Below, in pieces: positions 841 to 27,895 of a DNA stretch of 35,015 nt. Below the pieces are notes generated by a model. That model searched no databases and was not told the DNA's origin. It saw only the letters and a program-made list of their open reading frames with translations. Origin of the DNA: Trichosphaerium sp. ATCC 40318 (Eukaryota > Protista > Tubulinea); the NCBI GenBank assembly GCA_038496445.1, contig JALMLS010000383.1, positions 1-35,015 of the forward strand, in the 5' to 3' direction. Each line of letters begins with the position of its first letter. Positions within the stretch are counted from its first letter, which is position 1. Both the position numbers and the translations under genes were made by a program.

Positions 841-2247
841 ATGGCTTCTAAATCACCTAAGGGGTGAGCTTTATCATGTTTCTAGCGCATTTATGCTCTT
901 TGACACTTTCCAACATTAACTCGCCTTTAGAGACGACTTTAAAACGTGTCATGTGACTACAGTTGGCGTACAAAACGAAATAACAAAAGAAGGACCACAC
1001 CAACCAGAAGCTGGTCGCTATCATTTATTTACAGCAAAACTATGCCCATTCGCACACAGGCACGTATTATTATTGACCATAAGGGTATCTACGCTTCTTC
1101 AAGCTACCCTCGGGTGTCTTTCCTTTTTTGCCTGAAAATTATTCCGAAATCATTCACACCTTTTGTGGTCGTCTGATTGTCAACCCATAGTTTGCAAGGT
1201 GTATAACCAAGCACCGTTAGATATTCATAATGAAAAATTTACCGCAAATTTATCCGCTAACACGTGCTTTTCCTTTTTGAAGTATTACCGAGATTATAGG
1301 CATTTGTTGCTTTTGTTTTTTTTCTCTTTGCCTTTAACTTTGCGCTTGACACTGTTGTGCTTATTTGCATTGATAGAACAGAAATTGTGAGAAGACTGAA
1401 AGGCTTAGAAGATAGCATTGGGTTAACTATAGCTTGCTCTATTCAATCTGAGACGGGATGGAAACTAGACAATGTCTACGCTGGTAAGACTTAAACTTTC
1501 GCCCCACAGCTACATAAACACTTACACCACATGTAGCGAAGGATGGAGAACCTAATCCAGTGAAAGACACCAAGACTGTACCTGATATTTACCGAGTAAG
1601 TTTATTTTCTGAAAGAATGTTCATGTTAACAAAGTTCATAGCTTGGTACTGATAATCCTCCATCTCGATTTTCTGTACCCGTATTCTACGATAAGAAGCT
1701 TAACAAAGTCGTAAATACAGAATCAGCTGAAATAATAAGAATGCTAAACAGCAGCTTTAATGACGTTTCAAAAGTCCCAGAACTTGACTTATACCCAGAA
1801 TCCCAGCGTAAGGACATTGACGCTTTCAACGACAATATCGGAACTACCTTCGTATCCGCTATATATCGTGCTGGTTTCGCTAAAGATAAGGATGTATACA
1901 GTAAGTACTACGACTCTGTCTTTAAAGCTCTTGAAGACTTGGACAAGCGATTTTCTGATGGAAGAAAATATGTGTTCGGCGACAATCTCACTCTTGCTGA
2001 TGTCTATGTTTTCGTACACGTGATTCGGTTCGACTCTGTTTATTACGGATTATACAAGCTTAACGAAAAGCACATTCATGAGTATCCAAACATCAGGGCG
2101 TACATTGAACGTCTTTGGAAAATTGATGCTTTTTCTAAATCTACTGATATCAAAGAAGCACAGATTGGATACTACTTAAGCTGGAATCAACCAAGCCAAA
2201 TAAAAGTTGCTCCTAAAAGCACTAGTATGGGTTGGTTACTTGGATAA
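841..2247 (+). CDS. Glutathionyl-hydroquinone reductase / omega-like GST (Ecm4/YqjG family), about 6 exons
   Basis: Spliced product has EAGRYHLF..CPFAHR|TEIVRRLKGLEDSIG, RFSVPVFYDKK..VVNTESAEIIRML, IYRAGFA and LTLADV..IRFDSVY. Confidence 0.9.
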
Positions 2248-4983: not shown

Positions 4984-5577
4984 ATGACAGCAACACAAAA
5001 GGCACTTGTTCACAATCTACATGCCTTTACAATAGCTAATGAACCGTTAAAACAGACAAATACCTCAGAATTAGATGAATGCTATCTAGTGCATCTTCCA
5101 GTAGAGCTACAGCTTGATATAATTGACTTGGACACTGAATTGGAAATAAAGTGGCCTTTGCTCTCAAAAAAGTCAGCAATCATAACAAGATATGATAACG
5201 AATTGAATAAACATGGGAAATGGACAAAATATTTGGTAGAACCATCTAGAAGGATAAACCCGAAGATTTTAGGTGTTGAAGATTGGAATCATGGTGCAGA
5301 GAATGGAGAGTTCAAAAGTTGGCACAAGAATGGTCGTCCAAAGCTTTGTTGTAGTTATGTTCTTGGTAATCTTGAACGAGAGTACAGAACTTGGTACTAC
5401 ACTGGACAAATCAGCACTCAATGTAATTATGTAAGTAGTAATCTTGATGGAGAGTACAAGAAGTGGTATAAAAACGGTGTACTATGGAAACACTACAATT
5501 ATGTTAATGGAAAACGAAAGGGTGAGTGCAGAGAATGGCGTGAGCAGGGACAGATACATATGACTTGGATAGAATAA
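4984..5577 (+). CDS. F-box-like + MORN-variant (MORN_2/YwqK-like) repeat protein, intronless
   Basis: LVHLPVELQLDIIDLD followed by GE(F/Y)KxW(H/Y)xNG repeats. Confidence 0.8.
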   Translation: MTATQKALVHNLHAFTIANEPLKQTNTSELDECYLVHLPVELQLDIIDLDTELEIKWPLLSKKSAIITRYDNELNKHGKWTKYLVEPSRRINPKILGVEDWNHGAENGEFKSWHKNGRPKLCCSYVLGNLEREYRTWYYTGQISTQCNYVSSNLDGEYKKWYKNGVLWKHYNYVNGKRKGECREWREQGQIHMTWIE

Positions 5578-12571: not shown

Positions 12572-14279
12572 ATGAATTTGCTTAGTTTACCATGCGATCT
12601 ACTAGTACGTCTGGCGAAGATCTTTACGACTTCCATTCACTTTCAACGCGACTAACACACTTTTAAAGGTCGAAATAAGCAATTACAACAATCACACCTT
12701 TAAATCCTTACATTCGCTGTCAAAACTAGCAGCTGTGAAGACCCATTTTAAAGCGTACGTACTAGACTGGTTTTTAACGCTTTTGCGTTAGTTCTCATCG
12801 CAAAAAACCAAATGCGCCGCTAACTTTTTCGTTTTTTACAGAAATCTCAGTAAAAACGGTCTTTGGATACAATGGCACGATAATGGTAATTTGAAAGAGA
12901 AGTGCTACTACCAAGAGGGAATCAAGGAAGGAATGTTTTTAGCTTGGTACAAAGACGGGCAAATAAGTCACCAATGGCAAAACAAGAACGATCACGTTGC
13001 TGGAAAAGCTACAACGTGGTATTCAAATGGACAAATCCATTTAACTGGATTCGTTATTGAAGGAAAGCCTAAAGGAGAAACAAAGGTGTGGCACGAGAAT
13101 GGACAGTTACATAAAGCGTATTGTTTTAATGATAATGGAAAGATGGAAGGAGAGTTTCAAGAATGGAATAAAGACGGTGTTGATATTCGTCAGTGTTTCT
13201 ATAAAAATGGAGAAAAACAGGGTTTGTATATGGAGTGGCACAATGATGGTTCATTAAAGGAGCACAGCTATTACAAGGATAATGAGTATCATGGGGATTG
13301 TACAAAATGGAGTAGAACTAATCAAGTGATATTTAAAGGTAGTTACAAGGATGGTGAGAAAACAGGTGAACACAAGTTTTTACGTCCTGACTCTGGGGTG
13401 TTGTACAAAACACGTGTTTTTACTAAAACGCAAAGTGGTCTTAACATAGTAGAAAAGAGGAAATTTGATGAGGGTGGGCGGTTGGAGTGTTCTGCTTTCT
13501 ACAAAGAAGTCAGTGAGAGTAAAATTAAAGAAAAACAAGCAGATCGCAGATCACGCCGCCTGAATTTGGTTAGCAGCTCTATCTCAGCAGTTGGGCATGG
13601 TGAATACAAATGCTGGTACCCTAGTAATGGTCAACTGAAAGTTGAGTGTTTTTATAAAGACGGGAAGATTCAAGGTGAGAAAAAAAAGTGGCATGAGAAC
13701 GGACAACTGAAATCAGTTGTTGGATTTAAAGATGGATTAGAAGAAGGAGAATTTAAAGAATTTTATGATAATGGCCAGTTAAAGGAGAAGCACTTCTTTA
13801 AGGAAGGTATGAAGGAGGGAGAATGTACTGAGTGGGGTTACCATGGAGAATTTACAAAGTGTTGTTTTTATAAGAATGATAAGCTTGATGGAGAGTATCA
13901 GACTTGGAATGATGATGGTAAGTACTGTGTTCATTGCTTTTACAAAAATGGAGTAAAAGTTGGTAAATATGACGAATGGAATTACAAAGGAGTAATGCAA
14001 TTAGATTGCTTTTATGATGATAATGGAAAGTTAGAAGGAGAGTATAAAAAATGGAACTTTAGCGGAGTATTAGTGAAGTCTTGTTCTTATAAGAATAATA
14101 AGTTACATGGATTTTATATGATTAGAACAGTAGATGATGATTATGAAGAGGAGGTGACTTATACAAGTTATGAGAATGGAGTAGAGGTAGAATATAAGAA
14201 GCTTTATGAAGATAAACTGGCGCTTCAAAAAGAAGTTCAAGAACTTAAGGAACAACTGAAAGAAAGCCAAAACAAATAA
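12572..14279 (+). CDS. F-box-like + long MORN-variant repeat protein with 2 N-terminal introns
   Basis: Exons MNLLSLPCDLL|VEISNY..LSKLAAVKTHFKA|NLSKNGLW splice in frame to ORF 12891-14279, which has many GxxxxWxxNG repeats and a C-terminal coiled coil. Confidence 0.85.
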
Positions 14280-14490: not shown

Positions 14491-15524
14491 CAGTGGTAAA
14501 ATGAAAACGGGATTTTGGATATAAATCCCACTAAATTCCTTTGTTTTAGGGATTTTTAAGGTAATTTGTGAAGAATTCTTATTTTTATTTTTTTTTTATG
14601 GCAGGATTTTTGATAGAATTACCATAATATTCCCTTAAATACAGAATTTTCAGAATTATTGTACAAAATCCACCAAATAATGTACTAATTTAGTTAGGGT
14701 TAGGGTTAGGGCTAGGGTTGAGGTTTATGAAAGGTACAAATTAAGTTAGGGTTAGGGTTTAGTTTTATATTTGCAAAAAACCATCGACACCTTAGGTACA
14801 TAGGTTTTTCTAGCAAACAATATCCACATGCTATTATTAAAGGTGAAAAAGCCAATGGTACAGGTTAAAGTGCATTAATCCAAAAAGTAACAGAGAACGC
14901 GTTTTAGGTGGTTTGGAAAATCACTTAAACATAAATATCTCTTACTTATTTGTTTTAGGATGATTAAAGCATTGCAACAGCCTTATTACACCATTAAAGA
15001 ATGTATTTAAAGCATTAACTCCAAGTACGTTGTTTTTAAAGCTTATTTCCACTTAATTTATCAAAAAACCCTACGCGTTCTTAATTTAGCGTTTACAAAT
15101 GCATTAATTATTGTTCAGGCTCTCAAAACCAAATGCAATCAAATTACTTCTTTCGTTTATGAAGACATGATGTATTTAACTTGTACGTGTTATTTAGGAT
15201 GTTTGTATTTTGTAATGATCAATAAATAAAATGACTTTGCATTAATTCTGAACCAAAGTATCGAATAATATTTTGTGTAATTTATAAAGTATTTTTTATT
15301 GAAATCTACAAAAAATACATTAAGAAATGCTATAAAGAATACATAGAGAATTCTATATAAAATACATACGCAATTCCAAAAGTAATACTCTAAGAATTCT
15401 ATGAGTAATACTTATGGAATTTCATATAAATTCAATGGGAATTAAGGAAGAGTTTTTCCGTCTACTTTTCCCATAGGAAAACAAGGTGGATTACTTAAAA
15501 ATTCCCATTTTTATTTTACTACTG
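14491..15524. mobile_element. Non-autonomous AT-rich TIR element with internal TTAGGG repeats
   Basis: Left end CAGTGGTAAAATGAAAACGGGA matches the reverse complement of the right end CAGTAGTAAAATAAAAATGGGA at 19/22. No ORF. AA flanks both ends. Confidence 0.65.
14694..14757 (+). repeat. Interstitial telomere-like repeats
   Basis: (TTAGGG)3 CTAGGG at 14694-14717 and (TTAGGG)2 at 14746-14757. Confidence 0.8.
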
Positions 15525-17178
15525 AAAGGAGTTGTTTTGACACTTTACAAATTTTGCACGTTCAAGCACTGTAAAGCCTAATTCCTTCATAACTTCACCT
15601 GTTATTTCATGTATGTCATTAACGCACATACAGTTCAACAGTAACCCAAGGTTTTGTGTGCGTTGTTCGTCAAAACCGGACATCGTCAATATCTTAGTCC
15701 ACTCTAATTTTTTGTAGCTTTTGGCAGATGTAATATCTATTGGTTTACCACCGATAGTACCATTTGTATAATCTATTTTTAGTTCAGCAGGAATATCTAC
15801 AGGCACATGAAGTAAGGTTTTATGTTTGATTCCGTCTATGAGAAACATGGCAACAGTGACCTCAAGAATATTCAATCTGCCACTCCCGTCTTGATCAGCA
15901 ATGGTCCATATACGCGATAACTGTGAAGTTCTAAAACGAAATTCAGGAACAAGTTGGGTTTTTTTGGCATGTGTGCTGTACCCTAGTTTGGAAAGCAAAA
16001 ATAAATCTTTGCCTTGTTGGGTATCAATGTATCCAACATCGGAAGTGTCATGTTTACGAAACAGACCTTTGTATGCTTGTATATCTGAATCGGGTATACA
16101 CCATAATTTTTTATCACTATTTTGAACTTCTGTTCTAAGTAAAGTTTGACTTTGCAAAAAATACTGAGAAATATCTTTTTTGTGTTCGTACTTAGTGCCA
16201 CTAGTTATCATACCAGCTCCATTACCTTCTGCAGTTTCCACTGTACTGGTACCAATAGTGCCATGTATATAATCAATTTTTAGTTCCTGAGGAACATCTG
16301 CAGGTATATGAGTTACAGTTTTATTTTTGATTCCATTTAGGAGAAACATGGCAACAGTGAATTCGAGAACATTCAATCTGCCTCTCCTGTTTTGATCAGC
16401 AATACTCCAAATAACTGCCAATTGTGCATTTCTTTAATAATAGGTAATAAGCACAAAAAAACGTTTTATATCACATGTTGCATACCCCATTTTGTAAGGA
16501 ACAAATAATTCTTTGCATTGTTGTCCATCAATGTATCCAACGTTAGACGTATCTAGTTTATGAAACAGAGCTTTGTATGTTTTCATCTCTGAATCTGGTA
16601 TACACCACATGTCCTTTGAATCTTCAAGGTGTTCTTGCTCTCTGAATTGGAAGAAAAGTTGGTATTTGTTCAACTGGTTTTTTTTGTGTCTCGTACTTGT
16701 TACTACTGATAGCCACACCAGCGCCAGTTGTCCCACCGATGGTACCATTTTCATAGTCGATTTTGAGTTCAGGAGGTACATCTGTAGGCACATGAGGTAA
16801 GGTTTTACATTTGATTCCATCTATTGTGCATTACATGCAGATCAAAAGATTGTACTGCAAAATGTATATAATGACGTGACATACAACAACACAACAATAA
16901 AATGTCACAACAACACAACAACAAAGTGACACAACAACACAACAAGCTGACGGCAAAATGTACAAAGTATACTTGTAACAAAAATTAACACACAGCCATT
17001 AGAAATATGTACACATTGTGTCTAAACATGTGCAGTAAAAGCTCACAATGGTTTGAAAATCAGAAAGTGTGAAAATATTACTCCTGTGTCGTCACAGACA
17101 TTAAAAAAACTGCACAGTAGGCAAGACTTATTCGCAAATCCAGAAAATAACAAAATCTAATATTTATTTGTAGACAGC

Positions 17179-21688: not shown

Positions 21689-24472
21689 TTAACACTTATG
21701 CTTTCTTGCAAATTTAGGTGTTGTTGCCTTTATTCCATTTATACTTTCTCTTGTACAGCATATCCAAGAACATGTAAGGGCAGTGCACCTATTGCGAAAA
21801 TAAACTTTGTTGAACTACAAACCAATCATTGTGAACGTACTTCGTATCTTTCCTTCTCACCGCCACTTTTATCACCTTCGTCATCATCTTCATCATCACT
21901 ATCTTCATCTCCTATCCATGCACTCCATAGTGACTGTGCAGAATCTAGTGCTTTCTGTGACGAATGTGAATAACTTATTATTAGAAAGAAAAACCTATAA
22001 TTTGTTTGTTGTTAAATCATACGGCGCCTTTATCATCAAGTGGATAGTAAACGAGTATGTTTACTTTGGCATAATAAGCAGCAGCGATTTGAATTAGTGC
22101 CATCAACTCACAATCATTGCCATACCTATCAAGACATTTAACAATAAAACTTGTTAGTTTTCTTCTCATAATTGAAATAACTTACGCTCCACAACCCCTA
22201 TTTTCATCAGATTAAAATCAAACTAATACTTGTATTAGAACGTACCAGTTGCCAGTGTGTATAATTACACAGAACTCATCATCTTCAGACTCGTCATCCG
22301 AGTCAGACAACTCATCATCGCTATCATTCTGTTCTTCATCACCATTGGTGTTCTTTTCTGCAAGGCCCAATCCAATCTTTGATTCATGAACAGCTACAAA
22401 CATCAAGTTAATGGAAACAAAATCTTGATGAATGAAGGGTACCAGATACAAATGATGTGTAAGCAGTACGTAACGCATACTCAAGTTGCCACTTTTTGTA
22501 CTCTTTTCCCCAATCTTTCTGACAACCTTTTTGAAGTTATACAATTCCTTTCTAGTACAAAACTTTCGGCACCTGGTGCTTGCATGCTAACATAAAAGGT
22601 CAGTTGAATTAAATTATACGAATATTATTTCCATACCAAATAAGATTAGTCACTGTAGGTCCATTCCCAACTTTGGAAATTCCAGCTTTAATTGCCTTCT
22701 TTGATTTCGTTCTTCCTAATTTTACGCCATACAGCTTATCTGTATCAATAACACCAAGACGTTCAACGCCACTATTAAAAACCAACTCAGTATTTTGATA
22801 AAAAACAAAATGAATGTACCGAATAAGAATGGGTGTTGGAGATGAAGAAGCGAGGTTTCCTTCTTTTAGTGTGCGTGTATGAGTACCTAATTGCTTTATA
22901 TCACCATCATCCCGATTTGCCTTTACGAGTAGCACTGTAATAGCATTAAGACCAATAACAATATCAAGAAAATTCATGCGTTGGTTCAGCAAAACGTACT
23001 TTCACGAATTGAAGCAAGAGCTGGATGCTCTGCAACTTGAATTTCGTCTTGAGCAAATAAACTTTTTGCGCCATAGTACTTGAAAACGTCTCTAAAACCA
23101 ATCAATTAAACAATTCAAACAAAGAGCTGTATAATGAATTGCAACTTTACCTCTGTGCGAAGTTGAGGTACCAACTGAAATCGTTTGGCTATGTTATTTA
23201 GTAAATTAAATGTACCATTACAATGCATGTATTGTACGTACTTGTGGCTCCTAAAAAAAAGTGTTTAGCACAAAACAAAAAAAAGTTGTGAGGTTTTAGA
23301 TACCTTATCACAGTACAAGAATGGTCCTTCAGTCGATTCTATTCGTAAGTAGTGTTCTTCGGTATCTTCTAAAATATTCGCTTTTCCATTTCCGTCTGTG
23401 CGATCCACAACTCTTTTAGTGTCATCAACAACCTGAAAATAATTCAATAAAAAGCGTATGATAATGCTTGTACCTCTTTGCCATCAACTATAAATATATA
23501 CTCGTGGTTGGCATCTTCATCATCGAGCTCTGGTAGTTCTGATACAACTGTAGCCCAAACATTCTCTACACTTTCAAGTTAAAGTTGGGAATACAAAACA
23601 ACACAGTGTTTTTACGTACCTGTGTGTAACTCAATACACTGAAGATTAATTGGTCTATCTCTTCGCCATGTGTTGAATGTACCAACAACCTGTACTTCTT
23701 TTGCTTTGCGCTCAGGGTCATGCCAAACAAATGAAATACCGAATCCTATTAAATTCAGATTCTAATCATAAAATGATTGAAAACACGTGATAAACAGCGT
23801 CAAGATTAACGTCTTTCTTATAAAAATATCAAGGCTTCAAACAAATGTTTGCCCATGGGCGCACGTGATAAACAAAAAAAAGTTCAAGTTTGTGAATCTT
23901 GTGCATTTTGGCATGAATCTTGCCATGCAGCTTATACTTCAAAAAGTGTTTGTACCTGCGTTATCAGGGAACTTTGCGACATTTACTTTCGTAACAACCA
24001 CTTTTGAAGATGCTGTACCGTGTTTAGCATACTCTGCTATTGTTTTATACACAGTTTGCTTCCTTGCGCCATTAACTTTGGGTGGATACTTTTTAACAAA
24101 GCCGCTTGTGTTGAAGGTCCTTCTCATCATAAAGTGCTCTGGATCTACGAGGCCTAACATCACAGAATCAGGTTAATGAAAAAAGAGAAAAACCGCATTT
24201 GCTGTTGTTGTTTTGGCACGTTTTTTGATTTTAGGTACCCACGTACCATTAGAGCCTTCCTGTATTGATTTGCTATCCCATTTCTCTCGTTGAGCTAGGA
24301 AATCGTCATCATCCTCGAAATCAGAAAATTCTTCGTCAGAGCTTTCGTTTAACATGTTTGGTAGGTTTTCGATAATACTCTCTTCTCCAGTCCCTTGCTT
24401 ATTCCATTTAGCGCGTTGAGCTAGGAAATCTTCTTCATCCTCATAATCAGAAAATTCTTCGTAGTCAGACAT
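21689..24472 (-). CDS. PARG-family poly(ADP-ribose) glycohydrolase-like protein with an inserted CBM48 module
   Basis: Spliced motifs WYLNFAQR|DVFKYYGAKSLFAQDEIQVAEHPALASIRE, PTPILIR|GVER, PTVTNLI|CMQAP, YALRTAYTSF and IHTGNW|GCGA|YGNDCELMALIQIAAA. CBM48-like block FVWHD..KEVQVVGTFNTW..HEYIFIVDGKE..GNGKANIL at about 23375-23746. Confidence 0.85.
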
Positions 24473-24856: not shown

Positions 24857-25075
24857 TTGAGTAAGATACAATGGTACAGATGTAACCAGAAAGGACATTA
24901 TGTGAATAAATGTTGGAAAAAGAAACATCAAGGAGTGATAAAAGAGGAAAGCGCTACGATGATAGAGATGATTACACAAGAGATCATGGACGCAGAGGAT
25001 AGTTGTGATAGAAGAGACAGAGAATGCGACAGAAGAGGCAAAAGCCGTGATAGAAGAATCAAAGAGGTTATTTAA
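24857..25075 (+). pseudogene. Degenerate gag-type CCHC zinc knuckle (retrotransposon remnant)
   Basis: SKIQWYRCNQKGHYVNKCWKK fits CX2CX4HX4C with the first C mutated to W. An in-frame stop lies just upstream. Confidence 0.55.
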
Positions 25076-25094: not shown

Positions 25095-27051
25095 GTCAAA
25101 CATGAAAAGTGTCCCAAAACATGTAAAGTGTCCCAAAAAAAAATGCCATGTTTTTTTTGTAATTTATTTTTTATTTTTACACTATTTAATCTAGCAGTTT
25201 AAAACTTTCGTCACACGTCATTAACACCACTGCGCATATTCTACAACGTGCGACTTCTATATGAGCAACCATTCTCATGAGTTATAAATCGCACTTTAGC
25301 TGCGTCCAATTTGATGCAATTTGGGCACACCATGTGAGTACCACAATTGATGCACCACTTCCACCCTGCGCCACCTCTCCACACCTTTAACATACATTCA
25401 CGACAGGTGTAAATTTGATGGAAGTACTTTTTTTTAGCACTTTCTTCTTTTTTGCGAATTTGATTTTTTAGTTTGGTTTCTGCTCTCTGCTTCTTACGAC
25501 TTTCTTGCTCCTTCTTTTTTGCAACAGAGGCTGCCTTGCGCTTTTGTCTGTTAACTACTGCAGCTTCTTTTTCAAGCCTTTTTTTTCATCATACTCATCT
25601 TGATAATAGACCAACCCTTCTGTGCCGAATACATCCTCCTTTCCCATATGGAAGGAAATTGTTCTTTTCTTTCTAGGAGGCATCTTTGATTCAATTACAT
25701 GTTGCATTACTAGTTCAGCTTCTTCAACTTCAGGGTCACTTGGCGCAGTGGAGTTTGAACTTTTTTTACCAACATTTTTTTTGCCCGGTCCAAAATTTTT
25801 TTACGATCATACGGCCATATACCAACACTCTCCCAAGCGCTTTTAATGATATGAGGTAATAAGGCTTGTCTTTCTGCTTCGTGAACAATACTCAAATTAA
25901 AATATTGTTGGCTCCTAGTCACTATGGCATGCTTACTCTCTTGTGCATGCAGTTTTGTGAAAGTCTTGGCTAAGGTCGCAAATGGTTTATCATCGAGAGG
26001 TTGTTGAAAATGGGATGTATGTGCTGGCCATACCATGGTCATCACATTCTTTTCCATACATTGTAAGAGGTGTTCTTTTTTAATGTGAGGTGACAAGCGA
26101 TCCAAAAATAAAATTGCTGTTCGATCTCCCTGAAAACTCGAAATTTCTTTAAGGAACACTGTCAAAATCTTTGGCCAAATTTCATTTGTTACATAACCAT
26201 TGCGGTGATAGCAGTAGTAACGTGGCCATGATGAACGAGTGTTACGTTCTTTGTGGATCATGAAATTTGCCTTTTGAGTTGGCTTTCCATTTTTTCTAGC
26301 CGCCATAATGTACACTGTGAGGAGGACCCTCCCAGTAGCTGATACAAACGGGACCAGTGTCACATTTAAGCCTGACCTTAGTGCTATTGTACCATGATTA
26401 GTGCGTCTCCGTGCTCCCATCACATGGTGAGTAAACTTGTTATTTTTGAAAACAAAAAGTTTTTCATCAGCGTTGATCATAATTTCAGGAATGGTTGGGA
26501 TTCTCTCTTGAATTTCTTCATAGGCGTCACAGAACTTTCTAGTGAGGACTAAAGTCTTTGGTGTAACGCGTTGGTAGCTTATTGGTTTTGGAGTCGTCTC
26601 AGTAAGGAAATCTGACCAACGTTTCTTGAACCCATCAAACCAACCTCGCATATCAGATTGGGGTCTTTTTTTAAACAAAACACGTGCGGTACTCCGTAGT
26701 TCTTCAAGTGATAAAGGCATATGCATCGCATCAAACGCCATACAGTACCCCACGAGTTTTTTTTCTTGTGTTTTCGTAAATATTAAATTTCCGTGCCCCA
26801 AATTCTCCCGTCTAAGTGCTCGGTGAACTCTCTTTTGTAGTGAATTAGGGATTACGCCGTAGATAGCAGCCACTTCCGTGCAAATTTCGTTTAATGAGCC
26901 CTGTGGTTCCTCGCTTTTGTTGTGGTAAATTTTTATAACGTCATTGGCAGCAAGAGTGATCTGCGAACTCTTTTCATTAGGTGCGGGCTTCATTTGTTGT
27001 TCAACATTTTTGGGACACTTTACATGTTTTGGGACACTTTTCATGTTTGAC
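25095..27051 (-). mobile_element. pogo/Fot1-type DNA transposon
   Basis: Perfect 45-bp TIRs GTCAAACATGAAAAGTGTCCCAAAACATGTAAAGTGTCCCAAAAA, with TA at 25093-25094 and 27052-27053. Confidence 0.95.
25241..26993 (-). CDS. pogo/Fot1 DD35D transposase with C-terminal Cys-rich finger (two -1 frameshifts in A-runs)
   Basis: CENP-B-type HTH (GWFDGFKKRW), NADE, FLDRLSPH and QPLDD (35-residue spacing). Adding one A near 25764 and one near 25582 extends it to CRECMLKVWRGGAGWKWCINCGTHMVCPNC. Confidence 0.85.
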
Positions 27052-27409: not shown

Positions 27410-27895
27410 ATGATTTACAACCTATCATACTTGCCGTTAGAGCTACAGCTCGATATGATTGATTTGGACCATGAAGTGTATTGTAAGTTCCCTTTACTAT
27501 CAAAACGGACAGCAACAACTACAAGGTTTGATTCTAACTTAAAGAAACACGGAAAATGGCGTTGCATGGCAAATATCATAGGAAAAACACAAATAGTGCG
27601 GCAATATCATTGGAAACATAATAAATGTCATGGGGAGTACAAAGAATGGTACGCAACTGGTCAAATACGTGAGATTGGTAACTACAACAATGGAGAAAAG
27701 GAAGGAGAGTTTAAGAGATGGCATGAAAATGGTCAACTGGCTGAAAAGGTTAATTATGTGAAAGATGTCAAGCAGGGAGAATACAAGAGCTGGTATGAAA
27801 ATGGACAATTATGGGTTCACTGTGCAAAGTTAGTTGATGGTAAATATCAAAATGGTTTTAAGTGCTGGCGAGAGAACGGTGACCTATATGAATAA
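27410..27895 (+). CDS. F-box-like + MORN-variant repeat protein, intronless
   Basis: LSYLPLELQLDMIDLD, LLSKRTA..RFD..KKHGKW and GEYKEWYATGQ / GEFKRWHENGQ repeats. Clear paralogue of 4984-5577. Confidence 0.85.
   Translation: MIYNLSYLPLELQLDMIDLDHEVYCKFPLLSKRTATTTRFDSNLKKHGKWRCMANIIGKTQIVRQYHWKHNKCHGEYKEWYATGQIREIGNYNNGEKEGEFKRWHENGQLAEKVNYVKDVKQGEYKSWYENGQLWVHCAKLVDGKYQNGFKCWRENGDLYE

Follow-up and report, generated by a model that had tools for sequence, protein, structure and literature searches.

A candidate CBM48-like module nested in the fold of a predicted PARG-like protein of the amoeba Trichosphaerium

Introduction

Removal of poly(ADP-ribose) (PAR) falls mainly to enzymes of the PARG family, whose known accessory domains are suggestive of DNA repair and RNA. 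Among PARGs, a nested carbohydrate-binding module (CBM) is not known: the accessory domains listed by Perina et al. 2014 (PMC4245714) are PBZ, Nab2 zinc finger, G8, transmembrane and L32e. Here, we analyze a gene in a 35,015-nucleotide (nt) stretch of DNA from Trichosphaerium sp. ATCC 40318 (JALMLS010000383.1, positions 1–35,015; hereafter, the window), which is contig C326 of a 70-Mb eukaryotic assembly; the window has a G+C content of 30–41% and introns of ~50 nt. The gene occupies the minus strand from 24472 to 21714. Comparison of its exons with protein families indicates that it is probably a single intact gene, encoding a member of a sister family of canonical PARG with a CBM48-like sandwich nested in a loop of the fold. 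A first-pass annotation of the window had read this region as a PARG-like ADP-ribose hydrolase with a CBM48 module inserted in its catalytic domain; the sections below establish how much of that description stands.

Results

Gene organization

Between 24472 and 21714, a chain of short open stretches runs across three minus-strand frames and bears all the motifs quoted in the first-pass annotation: the two CBM motifs in E3 and E4, and the others in E7, E8, E12 and E13–E15. With the junctions worked out on the DNA, the gene comprises 17 exons, and its coding sequence measures 1710 nt (569 codons). Every one of its 16 introns is GT-AG, the phases agree, and zero in-frame stops interrupt the frame. 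Introns measure 41–210 nt, the majority 41–68 nt, and the longest (210 nt) lies directly 5′ of the CBM exons.

Exons were compared singly, one at a time, in every profile or protein search. The family profile cited below was built from 134 members of the sister family, and each window exon was scored against it together with 20 shuffles per exon. The exons are as follows, with scores and positions referring to this profile unless another is named.

E1, 24247–24472, minus strand: acidic N-terminal extension; open frame with donor GTACGT and no profile counterpart
E2, 23956–24153, minus strand: N-terminal segment of the PARG-like fold; 23.0 bits, positions 6–62 (shuffle maximum 0.3)
E3, 23620–23745, minus strand: first third of the CBM48-like insert; AMPK1_CBM 17.7 bits, E-value 0.004, positions 5–30
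E4, 23474–23565, minus strand: middle of the CBM48-like insert; positions 37–53 of a CBM profile from this genome, hhalign probability 69%
E5, 23304–23432, minus strand: end of the insert, after which the PARG-like fold resumes (last 18 residues, positions 66–83)
E6, 23242–23250, minus strand: possible 9-nt micro-exon, optional; AG/GTACGT borders, phase 0 on both sides
E7, 23151–23188, minus strand: WYLNFA, strand into the catalytic loop; 6.7 bits, positions 90–99
E8, 23000–23091, minus strand: FAQDEI stretch, catalytic loop with QDE; 44.0 bits, positions 101–129
E9, 22820–22934, minus strand: 2.6 bits, positions 133–153, in order with its neighbors and open in all paralogs
E10, 22637–22771, minus strand: family-invariant Tyr and Gly pair retained; 8.8 bits, positions 155–205
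E11, 22573–22586, minus strand: 14-nt micro-exon, required for the frame from E10 to E12 and conserved in paralogs
E12, 22443–22526, minus strand: RTAYTSF; 12.1 bits, positions 215–234
E13, 22246–22393, minus strand: acidic low-complexity loop followed by the first part of the diphosphate-loop motif; its end matches positions 244–255, 1.0 bits
E14, 22186–22197, minus strand: 12-nt micro-exon at the center of TGNWGCGAYG; AG/GTAAGT borders, split codons giving Trp and Ala
E15, 22023–22125, minus strand: ALIQIAAA stretch, helix after the diphosphate loop; 30.8 bits, positions 261–293
E16, 21841–21954, minus strand: acidic C-terminal loop; frame open and in phase, no profile counterpart
E17, 21714–21788, minus strand: holds the stop and matches the extreme C-terminus of the relatives; positions 318–334, 1.6 bits

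The diphosphate-loop motif TGNWGCGAYG is thus spread over E13, E14 and E15. The stop codon lies at 21714–21716, and the lower edge of the feature as first annotated (21689) is 25 nt past it. The start codon of E1 is at 24472 or at an ATG near 24354 that is conserved among the paralogs of the gene. Three exons are tiny, namely E6 (9 nt), E11 (14 nt) and E14 (12 nt); E11 and E14 encode residues that align with motifs conserved in bacterial relatives, and the frame is intact without E6. Two alternative splice choices lead into stops and were rejected: one has its donor immediately behind the initial part of E9, the other its acceptor at E12 itself.

A sister family of canonical PARG

When the loop motif was back-translated and sought in genomes of bacteria and archaea, 28 loci emerged, a few of which are canonical PARGs. 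Most of them code for proteins of 330–430 residues from Planctomycetes, Verrucomicrobia, Treponema, Chlamydiota and Myxococcota, and these bacterial relatives score 33–61 bits against Pfam PARG_cat_C (cut-off 26.3), mainly over the C-terminal half of the model. A word search with the alignment of the relatives retrieved 299 proteins; the best 120 of these 299 measure 234–444 residues and have PF05028 as their sole domain, and among them are cyanobacterial entries annotated as hypothetical protein or PARG. As a side observation, the Verrucomicrobiaceae metagenome-assembled genome (MAG) contig JAIYDP010000213.1 (L066) holds three paralogous PARG-like genes within 8 kb.

Ten exons of the window gene match the family profile in strict order over positions 6–334, for ~130 bits by simple addition. 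Six score 6.7–44.0 bits; the remaining four keep the order on weak scores of −0.4 to 2.6 bits, the lowest being the E5 tail. Shuffles reach at most 1.9 bits. E1, E3, E4 and E16 have no match to this profile. Identity of E8 to the planctomycete and cyanobacterial relatives is 67–77%. Across 14 aligned relatives, 35 columns are invariant or near-invariant, and the window gene keeps 33 of them, 28 by way of the alignment and five through the table of split codons; among these, Ala233 was placed by eye only, the four residues of E11 aligning by eye with the conserved motif of the relatives that holds this invariant alanine. The two lost invariant positions are Phe205, replaced by Leu, and Gly306, replaced by Lys. 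The E5 tail keeps two conserved aromatics, one invariant and the other found in 13 of the 14 relatives.

The parallels to PARG motifs drawn in the first-pass annotation are borne out in part. The loop motif TGNWGCGA-aromatic-G is present in the window gene (with Tyr for Phe) and invariant in the 14 relatives. Conversely, an alignment with a canonical-type bacterial PARG (L063) shows that QEE reads QDE and that the GGG positions are non-glycine, both in the window gene and in 14 of 14 relatives. Because they are common to the window gene and every relative, the QDE triplet and the missing GGG are a trait of the family and not decay of this copy. Against the Pfam models, the window exons taken singly give one PARG_cat_C match, E15 at 13.4 bits (positions 173–203; cut-off 26.3), and no match to PARG_cat_N. 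Judged from these alignments, the window gene is a member of the sister family and not a canonical PARG.

Broader searches added little. A 130-residue open frame at 22612–23001 returned 0 matches at E ≤ 0.001 in a large protein search, the collection for which excludes records of this genome, so that the negative bears solely on close kin in other genomes. Exon-wise searches of solved structures gave nothing useful. This locus was absent from the scored candidates of six-frame genome scans with PF05028 and PF10021. In a six-frame scan of the genome, PARG_cat_C hit upwards of 15 distinct loci, so that the PARG repertoire is unusually large.

Predicted fold of the sister family

An AlphaFold2 model of the bacterial relative on L065 has a mean predicted local distance difference test score (pLDDT) of 87.8. 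Foldseek matches this model to human and Tetrahymena PARG with an E-value of 2e-14, and VIA-align superimposes it on canonical PARG with Z 22–23 and a root-mean-square deviation (RMSD) of ~3.0 Å over ~270 residues, such that res. 41–353 of the model superpose on res. 616–936 of human PARG. Z falls to 16–17 for bacterial-type PARG, where model residues 66–326 are covered, and to 13 for plain macrodomains, where the match runs from model residue 103 on. The model thus predicts that the sister family has the PARG fold including its N-terminal extension. Since the window gene is homologous in order to the family of the modeled relative, the PARG fold can be provisionally carried over to it.

A CBM48-like insert between the N-terminal extension and the core

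The first-pass annotation took an exon at 23955–24171 for the N-terminal segment of a PARG-family protein, and the profile match of E2 agrees, with the bounds refined to 23956–24153. The next residues to match are those of the E5 tail. Between them, E3, E4 and the first half of E5 form an insert of ~100 residues that has no counterpart between profile positions 62 and 66. Mapped onto the L065 model, E2 corresponds to res. 38–90 and ends in the strand formed by res. 84–90, and the E5 tail supplies the next strand (res. 107–111) and the aromatic pair. The insertion site is therefore the loop spanning res. 91–106, between the N-terminal extension and the macrodomain core. The place assigned earlier to a CBM48 module, between an N-terminal segment and the catalytic core, is thus supported by the order of E2, the unmatched stretch from E3 into E5 with its AMPK1_CBM-like E3, and the E5 tail.

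The nature of the insert is indicated by several comparisons. In the most divergent paralog, C68:138k, E3 scores 17.8 bits (positions 5–30) and E4 19.0 bits (positions 36–56) against AMPK1_CBM (PF16561), which sum to 36.8 bits; this paralog is without the five-residue acidic loop that the window E4 carries. E4 also follows E3 in order on a profile of the CBMs of this genome, where control exons reach at most 0.5 bits. NCBIfam models gave faint GlgB CBM48 matches only, in E3. The insert retains the AMPK1_CBM core motifs and, in E3, the first sugar-binding tryptophan. In rat AMPK β1, the two sugar-stacking tryptophans are W100 and W133, the second corresponding to the position that follows VDG. 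Among the bona fide CBMs of this genome, a tryptophan follows VDG in two of four and is absent in the other two. All of these bona fide CBMs are too distant for one to be named as donor of the insert.

Paralogous copies and selection

At least seven further copies of the whole unit are present in the genome, at 73–98% nucleotide identity. Near-identical copies (97.6%) lie on C364 and C449, C68 carries four tandem copies and one inverted copy, and C502 holds a fragment, the copies on C68 and C502 being 73–89% identical to the window. In all six full-length copies checked, every exon is open and every indel is in frame. The intron at 23092–23150 is precisely absent in C68:125k, 132k, 138k and 13k, where the flanking exons read straight through; it is also absent in C502, as judged from a DNA alignment, and present in the window, in C364/C449 and in C68:135k. 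Three observations support the gene model: duplication involves the entire unit, paralogs lack one of the predicted introns with precision, and exons are better conserved than introns between copies.

The ratio of non-synonymous to synonymous substitution rates (dN/dS) between pairs of copies is ~0.2–0.4 for the CBM exons and 0.4–0.5 for the core. Within the gene, constraint is highest on the insert, where dN/dS is ~0.2–0.3 in most pairs and 0.36–0.43 against C68:138k. Between the window and the near-identical C364 copy, dN/dS is 0.05–0.33. Purifying selection acts on the gene. Individual exons follow this pattern: E2 is 82–100% identical among paralogs, E14 is near-identical in seven of seven copies (its last codon being altered in two paralogs), and the stop occupies the same position in all paralogs, bar a 3-nt indel. 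E1 retains an open frame in the paralogs, with in-frame indels, and the acidic part of E13 measures 42–82 residues depending on the copy, the indels responsible all preserving the frame. The acidic low-complexity loops of E13 and E16 have no counterpart in the bacterial relatives.

Several features distinguish single copies. The 5′ part of E1 in the window (24355–24472, 118 nt) is a partial tandem duplication found in this copy only, which encodes an acidic motif with aromatic residues and a Trp; the other paralogs, the 97.6% identical C364 copy included, begin at an ATG matching ~24354. The first intron donor (24246) is GT in the window and GC in six of six aligned paralogs (L035, L036, L037, L040, L041), which could reflect GC-AG introns or a different 5′ structure in those copies. 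C68:138k (L041:2135-2224 and a micro-exon) reads QGE for QDE and has Val for Ala in the loop motif, and may be drifting from the chemistry of the family. Synonymous divergence between the window and C68:135k (L040:3690-6720) is 0.04 in the core exons and 0.10–0.32 in the other exon groups; the low value in the core suggests gene conversion between contigs.

Relatives without the insert and distribution of the layout

Three more intron-rich genes of the sister family are found in the genome, at C268:34758-36072, C4:437650-439220 (minus strand) and C79:237940-239700 (L072–L074), which cover profile positions 3–335. A single exon crosses the insertion site in C268, with no CBM, and C4 has only a 69-nt, intron-sized gap there, likewise with no CBM. 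In C79, a 320-nt unscored gap occupies the insertion site and has no match to the CBM profile. Because these three genes share a genome with the window gene, the sister family extends beyond bacteria, and forms with and without the insert occur side by side. Neither the CBM-less amoeba copies nor the bacterial proteins stand out clearly as nearer to the window gene.

That the combination of CBM48 and PARG was unfamiliar, as remarked at first sight of the sequence, agrees with our searches, in which no paper or database match with the nested layout was found. PF16561 occurs in 0 of the best 120 of the 299 database relatives. Two metagenome scans with alignments of E2 and E3 returned no kin of the nested form, and two weak CBM-like metagenome loci considered as such (L070 and L071) were rejected, as no PARG-like sequence is present there. 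Literature searches found no paper joining PARG with CBM48, none joining an ADP-ribose glycohydrolase with a glycogen-binding domain, and none joining a macrodomain, a carbohydrate-binding module and ADP-ribose.

Neighboring open reading frames

Just upstream of the gene lie a CCHC zinc-knuckle-like open reading frame (ORF) at 24857–25075 (plus strand) and, at 25710–27044 (minus strand), an ORF of 444 residues that contains a DDE_1 transposase domain. Elsewhere in the window are three MORN-repeat ORFs (4984–5577, 12891–14279 and 27410–27895, plus strand), an ORF with a GST C-terminal domain (1741–2247, plus strand) and one with an EH/EF-hand domain (15519–16421, minus strand).

Discussion

The architecture predicted for the window gene suggests how the protein would most probably act. 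The PARG-like body would bind a substrate that contains ADP-ribose; the conserved Asp-Glu pair would hydrolyze a ribose glycosidic or ester bond; and the nested module would hold the enzyme on an α-glucan particle (glycogen) or another fixed partner, thereby limiting its targets. We infer the catalysis, the substrate and the ligand of the insert in this scheme. Its most specific form, in which a module lodged inside the catalytic domain anchors a PARG-fold hydrolase to glycogen particles, strikes us as unlikely. The glycogen-targeted de-ADP-ribosylase put forward in the first-pass annotation went further than the data carry, given the absent GGG, the QDE triplet and the missing second tryptophan of the CBM; we keep it as a reasonable hypothesis, not a finding.

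A number of results weigh against the nested PARG-like enzyme as drawn above. At the 5′ end of the gene model, E1 is uncertain, as is the 9-nt E6. Neither CBM exon of the window reaches the AMPK1_CBM cut-off (26.8 bits) alone, E3 staying at the score listed above and E4 not being reported. The position after VDG is Glu in seven of seven copies, not Trp. The catalytic signature departs from that of canonical PARG, so PAR hydrolysis cannot be assumed for a protein of this predicted type, and no characterized member of the QDE-type sister family turned up in our searches. The gene neighborhoods of the bacterial relatives hold an aldolase, an oxidoreductase, a peptidase, transporters and a sigma factor, with no clue to function, and no ADP-ribosyltransferase, sirtuin or glycogen gene lies near the relatives' genes.

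Other explanations touch different parts of the proposal. That the insert has a CBM48 fold without binding glycogen or starch, and serves in protein docking, in regulation or in binding another ligand with no link to storage carbohydrate, is a genuine possibility, though not the likelier one. In its favor are the invariant Glu at the second Trp position (a Trp is also missing there from two of the four bona fide CBMs of the genome) and the extra acidic loop of the window E4 that C68:138k is without; yet the first Trp and the AMPK1_CBM core motifs are kept, and the insert is under the strongest constraint in the gene. The PARG-like body might, for its part, be a non-catalytic reader (a pseudo-enzyme) that binds ADP-ribose or a related nucleotide-sugar without cleaving it, the CBM-like module serving to localize it. 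The missing GGG loop, the aspartate in place of the first catalytic glutamate, the QGE of the C68:138k paralog and the merely moderate constraint on the core (dN/dS 0.4–0.5) are compatible with this. However, Q, D and E are invariant in all 14 bacterial relatives, the glutamate essential in PARG is kept, the window copy retains nearly all of the conserved residues, and catalysis is the easier explanation for a family so well kept in several phyla of bacteria, which leaves a reader function rather unlikely.

Doubts about the integrity of the locus carry less weight. This copy could be a decaying or silent duplicate among transposons, with only the other paralogs functional, as the adjoining DDE_1 transposase ORF and the first-exon partial tandem duplication unique to it might suggest. 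We hold this improbable, as stops, frameshifts and damaged splice sites are absent from the 1710 nt, the copy retains the conserved residues, and dN/dS against the near-identical C364 copy is low. Nor does the length of the intron directly before the CBM exons speak strongly for two adjacent genes, one encoding a small CBM48 protein and the other a separate PARG-like protein. E2, upstream of the CBM, supplies the N-terminal part of the very PARG-like fold whose remainder follows the CBM; neither a stop nor a new start interrupts the frame, the gaps are intron-sized, and the whole unit has always been duplicated together. Since the insert splits the PARG-like fold, two separate genes would each be incomplete, and we consider this arrangement scarcely credible. 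The single gene with a nested CBM48-like module is the reading that we consider most probable.

If tethering to glycogen proved true, proteins bound to glycogen, or the glucan as such, would carry marks of the ADP-ribose type in this amoeba. For the QDE-type sister family, widespread in bacteria, there would then be a cellular context for the first time, together with a candidate class of substrates. A module of carbohydrate-binding type in a PARG fold would point to storage-glucan particles, a setting quite different from the DNA repair and RNA suggested by the accessory domains described so far. The practical value is limited for now, the function being a prediction. The locus also draws attention to a well-conserved, unstudied PARG sister family (QDE, no GGG) that spans several bacterial phyla and has at least four forms in this protist, and the presence of nested and un-nested versions in one genome amounts to a natural experiment.

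The protein predicted here shares features with several systems and differs from each. With canonical PARG (human, mouse, Tetrahymena and Drosophila; PF05028, PF20811), it would have in common the fold and the PARG-specific N-terminal extension, judged from the model of the relative, as well as the diphosphate-loop motif and the second glutamate of the catalytic triplet; canonical PARG has GGG, QEE and VDFAN, whereas the window gene has no GGG, reads QDE, and has the Asp and Asn of the VDFAN-type motif changed. Bacterial-type PARG (DUF2263, PF10021; T. curvata and D. radiodurans) is a macrodomain with a PARG-type N-terminal strand, yet it is a weaker match than canonical PARG. The bacterial PARG-like proteins (P0002, P0035, P0049 and P0063; L046, L050 and L065) are homologous end to end, with the same order, ~30–77% identity per exon, and the QDE triplet, the loop motif and the C-terminal motif in common with the window gene. 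Most of them are 320–360 residues long (a few measure up to 444), carry PF05028 only, have a short loop at the site of the insert, and are without the acidic extensions of E1 and of parts of E13 and E16. Finally, E3 and E4 match consecutive parts of the AMPK β CBM48 profile (PF16561) and have its first Trp and core motifs in common; that module leads the AMPK β scaffold, whereas its putative counterpart here is nested in another domain, with Glu in place of the second Trp and an extra acidic loop.

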